Part shown: positions 1,005 to 4,941 of the stretch, one piece after another
Layout: each line of letters begins with the position of its first letter
Position numbering within the stretch: the first letter of the stretch is position 1
Sequence record: OU343167.1
DNA length: 64,000 nucleotides
Reading direction: 5' to 3' (one strand)
Notes under the pieces: model-generated
The model's input: only the letters and a program-made list of their open reading frames with translations
Told to the model about the DNA's origin: nothing
Databases searched by the model: none
Program-made: the position numbers and the translations under genes

Positions 1005-1244
1005 ATGGAAACCATCATGCTGATCTGGTGGATCTCTATTTCGATTATCGCTGGGTCCCTGTTCGTAGCAAAACTGGTAAAAGATAACGATGATGTTCGT
1101 CGAACTCGTTTACCAAAGAAAGATATCATCATGCTCGACCGCATTAATATGATTTGCACTGCTCTCATATGGGGAGCTGCTATCGTAGCGCTGATCACTC
1201 TCTTCTTGGGTGGTCTTTTCATGATGATTGAAGCACAAGTGTAA
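1005..1244 (+). CDS. small 2-TM membrane protein
   Basis: 79 aa, AGGAG RBS, two helices around a charged loop. Confidence 0.75.
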   Translation: METIMLIWWISISIIAGSLFVAKLVKDNDDVRRTRLPKKDIIMLDRINMICTALIWGAAIVALITLFLGGLFMMIEAQV

Positions 1245-1247
1245 GAC

Positions 1248-1301
1248 GGCATAAAGCTCCTACCTTCGGGTAGGAGCTATGCTTTATTTTTTTTTTATTT
1301 T
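1248..1301. terminator. bidirectional intrinsic terminator between convergent operons
   Basis: GGCATAAAGCTCCTACC-TTCG-GGTAGGAGCTATGC followed by a long T tract. Confidence 0.85.
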
Positions 1302-1792
1302 AATCCAAGATCTTTCTCGATTTGTCTAGCTTGCGATGTACTTTGAATAGCCTTCGACTCTGCAAGTTCAATCATGAACAAACAATCATTAAAGGGTAGT
1401 TCAAAGAACTCTAGTAAAGATAAACCATAAATGTCATTGATCTTGTAATTGACAAACTTCCGTATCCAAGTTCTTTCAGGTCCACCTTCTACGACGTTTT
1501 CCTTAGGATGCATTCTAACCAGATCTAAAGGATCAGCCTCTGGTGAATCATGATCGAAAATACCGTAGTCTTTATGGTAGGCCTTCCTGGTCAACATTTC
1601 GGCAATAGCTGGCCTTACGGCATCTAGCGTTCGCACGAGTTCATCGAATGCACTCTTACCATTAACAGTCTTGCGACCGAAAGAGTTCATTGTAACGTGC
1701 CCGTTGTCGTCCTCCAAATTAATTGTTAGACGACTATGCCGGGGGTCCTCGTTGATTACTCCAGGTGCTTGGCTTTCTGGCCCGCCAACGTG
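1295..1792 (-). CDS. tail assembly chaperone C-terminal (gpT/gpE'/T4 gp51-like) segment, probably reached by -1 frameshift from 1756..3357
   Basis: Motif NDIYGLSLLEFFELPFNDCLFMIE resembles gpE'/gp51-type tails; frame stays open upstream of the TTG at 1717 across the stop of the preceding gene; no convincing RBS/start of its own. Confidence 0.6.
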   Translation of the reverse strand, partial: HVGGPESQAPGVINEDPRHSRLTINLEDDNGHVTMNSFGRKTVNGKSAFDELVRTLDAVRPAIAEMLTRKAYHKDYGIFDHDSPEADPLDLVRMHPKENVVEGGPERTWIRKFVNYKINDIYGLSLLEFFELPFNDCLFMIELAESKAIQSTSQARQIEKDLGLK

Positions 1793-3357
1793 AAAAATAT
1801 TGCCATCATGTCTAGCGGTACAAGGTGCGGGAAACGTTCGTTGAATGCTTGGCCCTGAGGACCTTTACATTCTTTGCAGTTATGCGATGGAAGAGCTACC
1901 ACAGCCAGTACACAAGAGTTAGTATACTCATGTACGGTATCAAAGAACTGTTCCGCGTACTGCGGATCACTCAGAGTGTTCGCCAGATAATCACTAATGA
2001 TTTCCTGATCGTCGGAAAGCAGTTGATCTTCGAAGTCTTCTACATCGTCGTCCTTTTCATAGATACCATCTACCCAATGAGCATACTGCATGGCGATAGT
2101 AGCTTTACTCAGTTTATCAATGTACGCTGAACGTTGAACACCATGTGGCGGTTCGTTAAATGTACCTTGAGACATTTCGATCAATGTCTGAGACCACTGA
2201 GAAGCAGCCATCTTACGTTGAGCGATAGTCGGGATAGCAAGACGAACACCAATATCACCAAACCAGAATACTTTCTTACCGCCAATACCGAAACCTTCAC
2301 GGTAAGCTTTGAAGTCTTCATCCGTAGCGGGTGCAAATTTCTTAGCGATAAATTTACGCTGATCATTACTGAATACAGTGTTGTCAAACCAAACGATAGA
2401 CGACATGTTAAGTTTTGCAGTGATACGAGCCGTACAGTTGTCCGGGTCTGCAATACATGGAACGTCGTAGTTGAATCCATCAATGTACATTGTAGAAGCT
2501 AGGGCATGATGCAGGATAGCTTCATCAAAGATCGATAGTTCATGTTCCAGGTCACTTGGAGTAATGAAGGACTTGTTCGATGCAATAACACAAGACAGAG
2601 CCAGATCAGTCATCGCGTTCATCATTACGGAACCAGCGTTAGAGAACGACATGCCTTTGGTTTGCATTCCCAGCCGCAGCTTGATCTGCTGCATTTCTGT
2701 TTGCAATGCGACTACTTCAGTAAGTGTCGGAGCACGCAGGCGAAGCCAGATACCCGAACGAGGCATAAACGTTTCGTATGTCGCACCAAGACCAGATTTC
2801 TTGGAGAGGTATGCCAACAGTTCTTCTTTACTGTGTCGTTTATTACGATCGATCTTTTGAGAAGGGCGGCCTGGTCGAATAAGGTTACCGTTATCATGAC
2901 CAGTAATACCTTGTTGCCATACAGAACCTTCACGTTCCGTCCCACCGATAGGAGTGGGGTCAAGGTTAGTATGGTTCATACCAGCTACTAGAGAAATCAA
3001 CCAATCTCGGTCACTGCTAGTAGTAGTGAGATCACCTTGGTGCATTCCATTCAATAGCGCCGAGTGACGTTCCAATACCTGGTTAAAGGTCTTGGGGTTT
3101 TCTAGAATGAAACTCATCAAAGAGGTCATACCAGGAATAGCTTCACTAGAACAAGAACGTGTCTCAGTGAAGTTAACTGGTTTCTGGTCAATTACCAGAG
3201 GAGGTAGTTCAACAGCAGGCGAAGAAGATACTTCTTCCGCAGGTGCGTCCGGTAGAGTGGGACCCGTGGGCCCCTGTTCTACTTCTGCATCAGCTTGCTG
3301 TTCCCAATTACCCTCAGCAGGATAATTGTCTTCTTTATCCATATCAAGCTCTTGCAT
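1756..3357 (-). CDS. tail/baseplate-hub assembly chaperone, T4 gp26-like (phiKZ gp77-like position)
   Basis: 533 aa; LRLRAPTLTEVV...IFDEAILHHALA...CIADPDNC and C-terminal CKEC pattern resemble gp26-type chaperones; acidic N-terminus. Confidence 0.55.
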   Translation of the reverse strand: MQELDMDKEDNYPAEGNWEQQADAEVEQGPTGPTLPDAPAEEVSSSPAVELPPLVIDQKPVNFTETRSCSSEAIPGMTSLMSFILENPKTFNQVLERHSALLNGMHQGDLTTTSSDRDWLISLVAGMNHTNLDPTPIGGTEREGSVWQQGITGHDNGNLIRPGRPSQKIDRNKRHSKEELLAYLSKKSGLGATYETFMPRSGIWLRLRAPTLTEVVALQTEMQQIKLRLGMQTKGMSFSNAGSVMMNAMTDLALSCVIASNKSFITPSDLEHELSIFDEAILHHALASTMYIDGFNYDVPCIADPDNCTARITAKLNMSSIVWFDNTVFSNDQRKFIAKKFAPATDEDFKAYREGFGIGGKKVFWFGDIGVRLAIPTIAQRKMAASQWSQTLIEMSQGTFNEPPHGVQRSAYIDKLSKATIAMQYAHWVDGIYEKDDDVEDFEDQLLSDDQEIISDYLANTLSDPQYAEQFFDTVHEYTNSCVLAVVALPSHNCKECKGPQGQAFNERFPHLVPLDMMAIFFTLAGQKAKHLE

Positions 3358-3368
3358 TTTGTATTACC

Positions 3369-3965
3369 TTATTTCACGAAGGAAACAGTATCAACACCAG
3401 CTTCTTGCATCTTAGCAATGAGACCCATCAGCAGTGGTTGAACAGCTGTTTCTACTTTATGTTGGAGATTTGCGTAACCCAAAGTCAGCTTACCGATTTG
3501 ATCGAGATCAGCCAGATCAGGTGTACCAGTTTTGTTTACGTGAAGAATACTAAGAGCTTCCAGAGCACTGATCATCTGTTCAATATCAGACATGCAGTTT
3601 TGCAGATCTTTAGAGAAACCTTCAGGATCACTGAGTTTACTCAGAATTTCTTCACGACGCTCCAGCGCCGGAATGATAACAATGGAAGTAGCATTAAGAG
3701 CAGCAGCTGTAATGCGATACAATTCGCGAAGAATGGCCCAGCCATCTTCTTTAATGAGTTGTTGTGCTGCTACAGCAGAAGCTTCTACAGCTTGGTCCAG
3801 TTGTTCTTTCGGGGACAGTGCGGTCATTTGATTGTGCTCCAATTTTGGATTATGGGGGAATATTTTATCAAGGGCTTCAGAGAGCCGTTTTTCATCTTCA
3901 GGAGTTGGTTTTGGATGGTGTATTGTATCCATCAAATTAAACGGCAGCTCACTAAACTTACTCAT
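3369..3965 (-). CDS. conserved hypothetical, helical protein (gp78-like position)
   Basis: 198 aa, GGAG RBS, co-oriented with the chaperone gene. Confidence 0.75.
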   Translation of the reverse strand: MSKFSELPFNLMDTIHHPKPTPEDEKRLSEALDKIFPHNPKLEHNQMTALSPKEQLDQAVEASAVAAQQLIKEDGWAILRELYRITAAALNATSIVIIPALERREEILSKLSDPEGFSKDLQNCMSDIEQMISALEALSILHVNKTGTPDLADLDQIGKLTLGYANLQHKVETAVQPLLMGLIAKMQEAGVDTVSFVK

Positions 3966-4089
3966 TGAAGCTCCTAGTGGAATAGTGTAGTAACATAGAT
4001 GTTACAGGAAACGTAACTTTTCACATATTACGAAGACATACCTGCAACATAACCGTATGTTAGATATTCATTTATACAGGATAATTCCA

Positions 4090-4941
4090 ATGAAAGAAAT
4101 GCTAGATAGTATCCTCACTCCCCTAGTGATGGAAGAACGAAAAGAAATCATGCTTGAATGCGTAGCTTCCCTAGAGGAAATGGATTACTCGGCAGCTCTT
4201 GATGAACTGCATACCGTTTGCTCTATTGCTGATGACAATGCAGACACTATGATGTTGCTTGGCCGTATTGACGATATTATCCGTGTGGCCCATGATCAGG
4301 TTCTAGCTGCACACGAAGTAAAAGTATCGGATGAGGCGACACAAGAGCAACGGCTTGCAATTGTCCGTACTATTTTAGGTTTGCCAAATTATATTCTTCC
4401 TGATCAGATTGAGTTGATTCTACAAGGCGATTTCGATAATGAGGAAATTCTTGCTCATCTGGTACCTATGTTTGAACGCCTTTCTTTCGACGAAGTATGG
4501 CCTTTAATTAATGAAGTATCTGTTTCTTTCATCGATGCTTTAAAAGCGATGGTGCAAGACACTATGATGACGCGTGGTCACATCGACGAATACATCGCTC
4601 CTGTATCCCGTATCCGTGTTCTTAATCGATTGATGAATACCATAGGTCGAGATAAGTTTAGTATGGTTCTCGAACTGTCTAATTCTGGTATGCGAGTCGG
4701 ACATGACTGGTTAGAACTCCTTTCTAATAGTCTTGAAAGCCTGGACAATAAGAACGCTCAAGATGCGGCTTATGAAATGGTAGGTCTTGCATTCTTCTCT
4801 AATCTTCACCTCGATAGTATCTATAGCACTGTTAAAGTTTCTATCGATGAATACACAGAGAACGAGATGGAACGTAATATCATGGAACGGGTGATCGACG
4901 AGATCAAGCGTAAAATGGGAAAGCTCTATGAAACTGCGTGA
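4090..4941 (+). CDS. conserved hypothetical protein (gp79-like position)
   Basis: ORF 4057..4941; ATG at 4090 has an AGGA RBS; overlaps start of the vRNAP gene. Confidence 0.75.
   Translation: MKEMLDSILTPLVMEERKEIMLECVASLEEMDYSAALDELHTVCSIADDNADTMMLLGRIDDIIRVAHDQVLAAHEVKVSDEATQEQRLAIVRTILGLPNYILPDQIELILQGDFDNEEILAHLVPMFERLSFDEVWPLINEVSVSFIDALKAMVQDTMMTRGHIDEYIAPVSRIRVLNRLMNTIGRDKFSMVLELSNSGMRVGHDWLELLSNSLESLDNKNAQDAAYEMVGLAFFSNLHLDSIYSTVKVSIDEYTENEMERNIMERVIDEIKRKMGKLYETA

Follow-up and report, generated by a model that had tools for sequence, protein, structure and literature searches.

Xu, Hendrix and Duda are said to have described, in 2004, a conserved -1 frameshift of tail assembly chaperones (cited in PMC9024508). 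In phages lambda (gpG/gpGT) and P2 (gpE/gpE') a slippery run lies at the 3' end of a morphogenesis-linked gene, a minority of -1 shifts gives a C-terminally extended isoform, and the arrangement is conserved where the sequence is not. The tau and gamma products of E. coli dnaX, two isoforms with a common N-terminal body made in a fixed ratio, arise at a homopolymeric, in-phase slippery heptamer. A different route is programmed transcriptional slippage on A/T runs, which is used by Thermus dnaX and some insertion sequence (IS) transposases and takes runs of about 8-9 residues or more. Here we analyze a locus of a phiKZ-like jumbo phage with a comparable layout, found in a stretch of 64,000 nucleotides (nt) from sequence record OU343167.1 (hereafter the window). 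It consists of a gene for a 533-amino acid (aa) protein homologous to PHIKZ077, called here the gp77-like gene, a T-run near the 3' end of this gene, and a small open reading frame (ORF) in the -1 frame (Table 1). A preliminary description, made from the sequence of the window, had proposed a programmed -1 frameshift at the T-run, and the related loci compared here support it. Programmed -1 recoding most likely yields, as judged from this comparison, isoforms of 533 and around 687 aa, and we give a probability of about 0.6 to the reading in which the gp77-like gene and the small ORF are one recoded gene and the slip is ribosomal.

The likeness to lambda G/GT and P2 E/E' lies in the layout. A -1 shift near the 3' end of a single 5' ORF would give rise to two isoforms, for which the comparative signal is strong, the products being predicted from sequence; the slippery run is again placed at the end of a gene that appears linked to morphogenesis, the arrangement persists where the sequence does not, and the jumbo-phage protein is apparently absent from the virion. 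The differences are equally clear, because neither jumbo-phage piece has a sequence-family match, the body has 533 aa versus about 140 aa, the gene is not placed between the tail tube and tape measure genes, and the fold of its product points to another family. The proposal that the pair belongs to the lambda or P2 chaperones thus fails on family, size and gene position, while the accompanying remark that the locus is detached from the tape-measure gene holds, as no tape-measure gene is adjacent. By analogy, the jumbo-phage gene would use the same principle as lambda G/GT, though its protein is unrelated.

With dnaX the locus would share an in-phase homopolymeric slippery heptamer and two isoforms with a common N-terminal body in a fixed ratio; in dnaX, however, the shift shortens the protein, and an upstream Shine-Dalgarno (SD)-like element and a downstream hairpin are present, neither of which is evident at the jumbo-phage site. 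With the transcriptional slippage of Thermus dnaX and the IS transposases it has in common that a homopolymer is conserved where two ORFs meet and that an RNA stimulator is not needed, and it differs from them in the length of the runs, which are of five to eight T residues (T5-T8) in the jumbo phages and T5 in the window.

A last comparison is with phage T4, whose gp26 and gp51 are listed as hub assembly chaperones (PMC3004832). Their genes (NC_000866, 15803-17229) are divergently transcribed neighbours, and both proteins belong to PF12322 and are therefore paralogues. Relatives of gp51 in the protein database also carry a second family tag, PF28602. As is predicted for the jumbo phages, T4 makes more than one such product, with 26' arising internally in addition to the paralogues 26 and 51. 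Neither the T4 nor the jumbo-phage protein has been seen in the finished baseplate, conserved Cys pairs occur in both, and the model of the jumbo-phage body matches proteins in BFVD that carry the T4 names. The T4 products, however, are generated by paralogy and internal initiation and not by a frameshift, and the jumbo-phage protein is twice as long.

Layout of the two frames in the window

The 533-aa ORF, its last residues, the A-TTT-TTC site and the -1 peptide quoted in the preliminary description were all found to be correct on the minus strand, and the -1 frame, given as stop-free from about 1863, is so from 1864. Most ribosomes would read the 0 frame and stop at 1756, producing the 533-aa protein with a C-terminal helix. 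Some ribosomes would slip back 1 nt on the U-run, in such a way that the A-site tRNA-Phe exchanges UUC for UUU, while the tRNA-Phe in the P site goes from UUU to AUU, with two of the three pairs kept. These ribosomes would then add 165 codons of the -1 frame to the 522 residues read through the second Phe, giving an isoform with the common 522 residues, a Gly/Pro-rich linker and a helical domain, in agreement with the 687 aa calculated before. The sequences themselves establish the site, the open frame and the conservation of both, along with that of the -1 protein in lineages lacking a start codon, whereas the ribosomal origin of the slip, its efficiency and the function of the protein are what we infer in this scheme.

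Table 1. Position of the features discussed in the text, in window coordinates.
Feature	Position	Strand	Remarks
gp77-like gene (PHIKZ077 / PhiPA3 gp074 / 201phi2-1 gp136 homologue)	1756..3357	minus	533 aa; TAA 1758..1756; phrog_4585, E 1e-156
Candidate shift site A-UUU-UUC	1792..1798	minus	0-frame codons ATA TTT TTC 1800..1792; T5 run 1797..1793
Stop-free -1 frame	1295..1864	minus	189 codons plus stop; 109-nt overlap with the 3' end of the gp77-like gene
Extension predicted to be read after the shift	1295..1792	minus	165 codons (1792..1298) plus stop 1297..1295; Gly/Pro-rich linker and helical domain
Downstream ORF as annotated in relatives (PHIKZ076.4 / PhiPA3 gp073 / 201phi2-1 gp135 homologue)	1295..1690	minus	131 aa from ATG
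69-nt block identical in the window and HPP-Temi	1740..1808	minus	Runs through T-run, dual-coded overlap and 0-frame stop
gp78-like gene	3369..3965	minus	198 aa; directly upstream, 11 nt from the gp77-like start; syntenic in all relatives
GC-rich hairpin, 10 bp	1255..1278	not assigned	In the gap that separates the extension ORF from convergent plus-strand genes

Conservation of the T-run and the -1 frame

The upstream protein gave tblastn matches in 214 phage records, from at least 10 host genera, and the downstream protein in 72. For the comparison we used 37 loci, 22 annotated and 15 from IMG/VR, and mapped the frames in each of them. The set contains phiKZ, PhiPA3, 201phi2-1, Phabio, RAY-like and Wellington-like phages of Erwinia, Salmonella phage SPN3US, E. 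coli phage Goslar, Klebsiella phages Eowyn and Centimanus, Ralstonia phages RSF1 and FLC4-3B, Xanthomonas phage Xoo-sp14, two Vibrio phages, Halocynthia phage JM-2012 and Bacillus phage AgentSmith. A T5-T8 run was detected at the homologous place in all 37 loci, in phase with at least U_UUY. In 36 of them the run lies 34-121 nt before the stop of the upstream gene, and a -1 ORF of 150-226 codons, which opens 5' of the run in the same number of loci, continues through the downstream gene. This arrangement is kept although the identity of the upstream protein falls to around 20%. The loss of the T-run or of the open -1 frame in homologues had been named beforehand as what would speak against a frameshift, and both are kept in these 36 loci.

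In several lineages the -1 frame is closed shortly before the run, with a stop codon 5 nt (JM-2012), 8 nt (pVa-21), 12 nt (phiKZ), 13 nt (Phabio and D6) or 14 nt (AgentSmith) 5' of it, so that the frame could be entered only at the run itself. The exception among the 37 loci is Xanthomonas phage RTH11 (OQ790161.1), where the run is present and the frame relation differs. In RTH11 the annotated upstream ORF of 627 aa continues in another frame and the extension ORF is +1 to it, corresponding to one apparent frameshift with respect to its relatives.

Could the arrangement be a product of chance, an artefact of homopolymer sequencing or a decaying gene? Homopolymers are error-prone in some sequencing chemistries, and RTH11 departs in its frame relation. 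The same frames, however, recur in around 30 distinct genomes and metagenome contigs, obtained over 20 years by varied sequencing methods and with varied run lengths, and constraint at the protein level acts on both frames, since the part of the 0 frame that follows the run is conserved too. The frame survey and the missing starts and TTT codon bias described below also contradict this explanation, which we hold to be scarcely credible. Because it recurs in 36/37 loci, the arrangement goes far beyond chance, and its origin by chance appears very unlikely.

The extension and its lack of a start of its own

The -1 frame was translated separately from the first codon after the run, and 21 of these extension pieces were aligned. 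They are homologous over their whole length, from the first post-run codon. The first residue is Tyr or His, after which the Pseudomonas phages have a Gly/Pro-rich stretch with GGPES and most others Pro, and the pieces share the motifs D-P-x-x-S-R-L, G-H-V-T and F-G, a near-universal A-Y-x-x-x-Y/F-G-I-x-D-H, and an S-x-x-E-F/W-x-x-x-P helix in the C-terminal region. Short C-terminal tails rich in Lys and Arg, differing in length, are found in many of the pieces; that of the window is short (…G-L-K). The open -1 ORF consequently encodes a conserved polypeptide, and this polypeptide lacks a start of its own. The first ATG, GTG or TTG appears at extension codon 85 in phiKZ, 87 in AgentSmith, 68 in Bosolaphorus and 56 in Phabio, in all cases preceded by conserved motifs. 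The probability that the bridge up to this point is stop-free, as derived from the stop density of the same frame within each gene, is 3e-8 for phiKZ, 2e-8 for AgentSmith, 4e-3 for Bosolaphorus and 4e-4 for Phabio.

In the window, the first NTG codons of the -1 frame are TTG 1717 and ATG 1690. The one SD-like element is a GGAGG (1714..1710) that is 19 nt 5' of ATG 1690 and overlaps TTG 1717, and it is changed to GGATG in HPP-Temi, a Pawinskivirus with 82.8% identity to the window over the 2.2-kb region of the locus; the statement that the downstream ORF has no start with a well-placed ribosome binding site was therefore right. The gp78-like and gp77-like genes have an AGGAG or AAGG 7-9 nt 5' of their ATGs. 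At the position of ATG 1690 Phabio encodes Phe and D6 encodes Asn, and phiKZ has no ATG there. Annotations put the downstream start anywhere between 4 nt ahead of the upstream stop, in 201phi2-1, and 219 nt beyond it, in phiKZ, and the family phrog_12109 spans extension residues 22-162, beginning 13 residues before the annotated ATG. Because this ATG is not conserved and lacks a well-spaced SD element, we read the downstream ORF as the C-terminal part of the extension, not as a separate gene.

When the extension profile was compared with 1.84 billion representative sequences, 382 relatives were found, the best 150 of which are all 84-175 aa long, with N-termini scattered along the profile and without any natural in-frame fusion among them. 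The four longest upstream homologues (613-674 aa) have their extra length at the N-terminus and still end just past Phe-Phe. The absence of natural in-frame fusions among the relatives suggests that both isoforms would be needed.

This absence would also be expected if the downstream ORF were a gene on its own, starting at TTG 1717, at ATG 1690, at a non-canonical codon or by reinitiation past the stop of the gp77-like gene, with the T-run merely encoding a conserved Phe-Phe. All public records do annotate two genes, and a joined coding sequence is annotated in none of the records examined; the window has ATG 1690 with a GGAGG upstream, and the internal initiation product 26' of T4 gene 26 shows that odd starts occur in this functional class. 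Against a separate gene, phiKZ, AgentSmith, Bosolaphorus and Phabio have no NTG codon until past the conserved motifs, and neither the ATG nor the GGAGG, with its 19-nt spacing, is conserved. Furthermore, the -1 relation and the continuity of the frame hold in 36/37 loci despite many insertions and deletions in the bridge, which argues that the bridge is translated, since an untranslated spacer would lose the frame. We regard two separate genes as quite improbable.

The T-run as a nucleotide signal

Elsewhere in these genes TTT makes up 211 of the 682 Phe codons (31%), with values of 0/14 in Xoo-sp14, 0/18 in one further locus (L022) and 2/20 in PhiPA3. At the site, by contrast, the codons are always TTT TTY or else NTT TTT TTN, where the leading codon, for Val, Leu or Thr, ends in T, and runs of at least five T residues are near-absent from the rest of the genes. 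A need for Phe-Phe alone, as assumed if the two genes are separate, can explain neither TTT where otherwise 0-30% of the Phe codons are TTT nor the T-ending codons that precede it.

The nucleotides after the run are also strongly kept, with ACN YTR GCG GSC in the Pseudomonas clade and ACC CTA in many other lineages. This conservation is accounted for by dual coding, as the overlap encodes T-L-A-G-Q-K in the 0-frame tail and Y/H-V-G-G-P-E-S in the -1 frame. The longest perfect match between the window and HPP-Temi in the 2.2-kb region is the 69-nt block over the site (Table 1). The site is thus kept among homologues beyond what the amino acids need, and the run is selected at the nucleotide level.

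Slippage by the ribosome or by the RNA polymerase

An in-phase U_UUN is kept at every site, and a slip by the ribosome is compatible with all of them, those with T5 included. A canonical heptamer (U-UUU-UUU, U-UUU-UUC or U-UUU-UUA) is present in about a dozen of the lineages examined, other lineages have G or A at the first position, and pVa-21 has only U_UUU. In the A UUU UUC of the window all pairs are restored after the shift in the A site, and 2/3 are retained in the P site. The T5 runs of the window and pVa-21 are short for polymerase slippage, yet they keep the in-phase U_UUN, and this favours a ribosomal slip.

Several points weigh against a ribosomal slip and the predicted isoforms. 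The first position of the heptamer is mismatched (A or G, not U) in the window, PhiPA3, Phabio and the D6-like phages. Most relatives have T6-T8, lengths at which some polymerases stutter. When the 90 nt starting at the run were folded for 18 lineages, no shared structure was detected (z from +1.2 to -1.6), an Rfam scan of positions 1100..4100 gave no match, and the only stem in the window starts 1-3 nt past the heptamer, too near for a stimulator, the usual spacing being 5-9 nt. Finally, the two isoforms are predictions from the comparison of sequences. The mismatch at the first heptamer position and the short spacer had both been pointed out as caveats in the preliminary description.

The stimulator proposed there was a stem of TTGGC and GCCAA with a CCAG in the loop that pairs with a later CTGG. 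All four elements are present on the minus strand (TTGGC 1788..1784, GCCAA 1773..1769, CCAG 1780..1777 and CTGG 1764..1761), but the stem and pseudoknot gained no support as a stimulator, as they show no covariation, no excess of pairing over shuffled sequences and no consistent stability across lineages. In 16 sequences of the Pseudomonas clade 74.8% of the cells were paired, versus 73.7% in the shuffles, with one compensatory pair. A 101-nt fold of the window has a z of -2.5, and its outer stem, which starts 1-2 nt past the heptamer, is not conserved. Neither a stimulatory structure 5-9 nt downstream nor an upstream SD-like element was found, with folding tools that do not predict pseudoknots.

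The same two proteins would result if the phage multisubunit RNA polymerase or that of the host stuttered on the template A-run and added one U to some of the mRNAs, which would then be read conventionally into the extension. What is conserved is the T-richness of the homopolymer and not its codon phase, since the registers NNT TTT TTT, NTT TTT TTN and NNN TTT TTY all occur, and the prevalence of T6-T8 and the many heptamers that are non-canonical at the P-site position fit this explanation too. Polymerase slippage would also need no RNA stimulator, in line with the lack of a conserved one downstream, and these phages use their own unusual polymerases, which are encoded beside the locus. On the other side, every run contains, regardless of register, the in-phase U_UUN that tRNA slippage requires, and the window, HPP-Temi and pVa-21 have only T5. 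Bacterial multisubunit polymerases need a run of 8-9 residues, and T5 is well below this length. The T5 of the window and the T5-T8 of the relatives do not make up a homopolymer of about 8-9 or more, as would be needed to span most of the RNA-DNA hybrid, a threshold that is bacterial and from which phage polymerases may differ. The conserved helical 0-frame tail means that both products matter, but fits either mechanism. Taking these points together, we consider transcriptional slippage rather unlikely.

A more specific form of this alternative, which we find distinctly doubtful, is that the T-run is a programmed slippage site for the phages' own non-canonical multisubunit RNA polymerases, giving a fixed share of mRNA with an extra U. 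If true, stuttering of a phage multisubunit polymerase, conserved in Chimalliviridae and their Bacillus-phage relatives, would set the isoform ratio of a core assembly factor.

In the literature searched we found no description of a frameshift in this gene, of a trans-frame product or of PHIKZ076.4, and an earlier mention elsewhere is possible; this accords with the earlier statement that such a recoding site is not known to have been described for Chimalliviridae.

Fold and possible function of the body protein

Neither piece gave a Pfam match at permissive thresholds, including 10 relatives of the body and 21 of the extension, and the PHROGs matches were only to phage families of function unknown. 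The body protein was modelled with AlphaFold2 from an alignment of 44 sequences, with a predicted local distance difference test (pLDDT) score of 84 and a predicted template modelling (TM) score of 0.82; residues 1-47 are disordered, and the 0-frame tail was modelled as part of the terminal helix. The model of the extension is poor (pLDDT 54) and mostly helical.

In a Foldseek search of BFVD with the body model, the orthologues were followed by 11 proteins that bear the name 'baseplate hub assembly protein, bacteriophage T4-like', 'baseplate hub subunit' or 'baseplate protein', with E from 3e-5 to 7e-4, probability 1.0 and TM scores by target of 0.49-0.62. The body thus appears to have a fold in common with proteins of the T4 gp26/gp51 type, as compared among BFVD models, the family having no solved structure. 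The AgentSmith homologue is also named baseplate hub assembly protein, T4-like, in GenBank.

As for the location of the protein, the hub in the virion structure of Goslar is T4-like, and all the hub density was assigned without this protein. In the annotation of 201phi2-1, gp136 has no mass-spectrometry note, unlike its neighbours. From the models and these data, the most likely function is that of a non-virion assembly factor for a T4-like hub, made as two isoforms in a fixed ratio, and we would give roughly even odds to it.

Other results count against this function. The function is predicted from fold similarity, and the search of the Protein Data Bank with the body model gave nothing below E 1; likewise, the profile of the gp77 family had no match among the sequences of solved structures. 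For 10 diverse family members PF12322 gave no match at E<=5, whereas T4 gp26 and gp51 match it with 8.8e-64 and 3.9e-52, respectively. An hhalign comparison between the alignment of the jumbo-phage family and one of 19 gp51 members gave a probability of 6.7% (E 0.005) over 62 columns around the CxxC, and single-sequence comparisons with T4 gp26 and gp51 remained below 3%. The extension has no likeness to gp26, gp51 or gp28 detectable by hhalign or Pfam. In addition, the homologue in phage Churi is among the proteins detected early in infection, which is unexpected for a late morphogenesis factor. The analogy to T4 gp26/gp51 drawn in the preliminary description therefore stands in part, with Foldseek matches to proteins so named and sequence profiles that do not confirm it.

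Two Cys pairs are invariant in 44 homologues, at residues 301/308 (C-x6-C) and 494/497 (C-x-x-C). Relatives of T4 gp51 have an invariant C-x-x-C and a third Cys. A metal site at the Cys pairs is possible.

Genomic context

The window belongs to a Pseudomonas jumbo phage of the PA1C/PS119XW group, phiKZ-like. Over the 2.2-kb region its identity is 100% with Pseudomonas phage vB_PaeM_phiLBG22 and 99.5-99.9% with PA1C, PS119XW, phiHQ, BRkr and HHBS36_1, phages of around 300 kb. In PA1C both ORFs lie on one strand, behind the gp78-like gene, and are annotated as hypothetical, the downstream one as 'similar to PHIKZ076.4' and the upstream one being the homologue of the PHIKZ077-type gene. Besides the gp78-like gene, the neighbourhood contains genes for a head protein, the virion RNA polymerase and a helicase, as well as small ORFs, with synteny in all relatives.

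The gene at the gp78 position of Halocynthia phage JM-2012 (1827-2231) is annotated as a metallophosphoesterase, and the gp78-like proteins of the other relatives as hypothetical. The second-longest perfect block shared with HPP-Temi is 67 nt long (3323-3389, minus strand) and reaches from the 3' end of the gp78-like gene across the 11-nt spacer into the 5' end of the gp77-like gene. Coupled translation, or a signal conserved in the transcript, may lie behind it.

At the other end of the locus, the hairpin of Table 1 is likely to mark the end of the transcript. An A10 run lies directly 3' of the stop of the extension ORF and is followed by the hairpin (1255-1294), with a terminator-like T tail on the plus strand only. 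ARAGORN found no tRNA or tmRNA genes in the whole window.

Meaning for the phiKZ-like phages

The gene is a core gene of these phages, found in every phiKZ-like lineage sampled (the 214 phage records), and its arrangement is conserved from Pseudomonas to Bacillus phages. Ever since the phiKZ genome appeared, annotations have treated it as two hypothetical genes unrelated to each other, with a downstream start that differs in almost every record. The reading as one recoded gene would correct the annotation of hundreds of genomes and define a previously unseen protein of around 687 aa. It would also give a first functional lead, that of an assembly factor made in two isoforms and folded like T4 gp26/gp51, in which the logic of a short and a frameshift-extended chaperone, as in lambda G/GT, would have arisen independently in an unrelated protein. 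The locus may further serve as a natural case for comparing ribosome and polymerase slippage, in phages that have their own polymerases and modify the host ribosomes.

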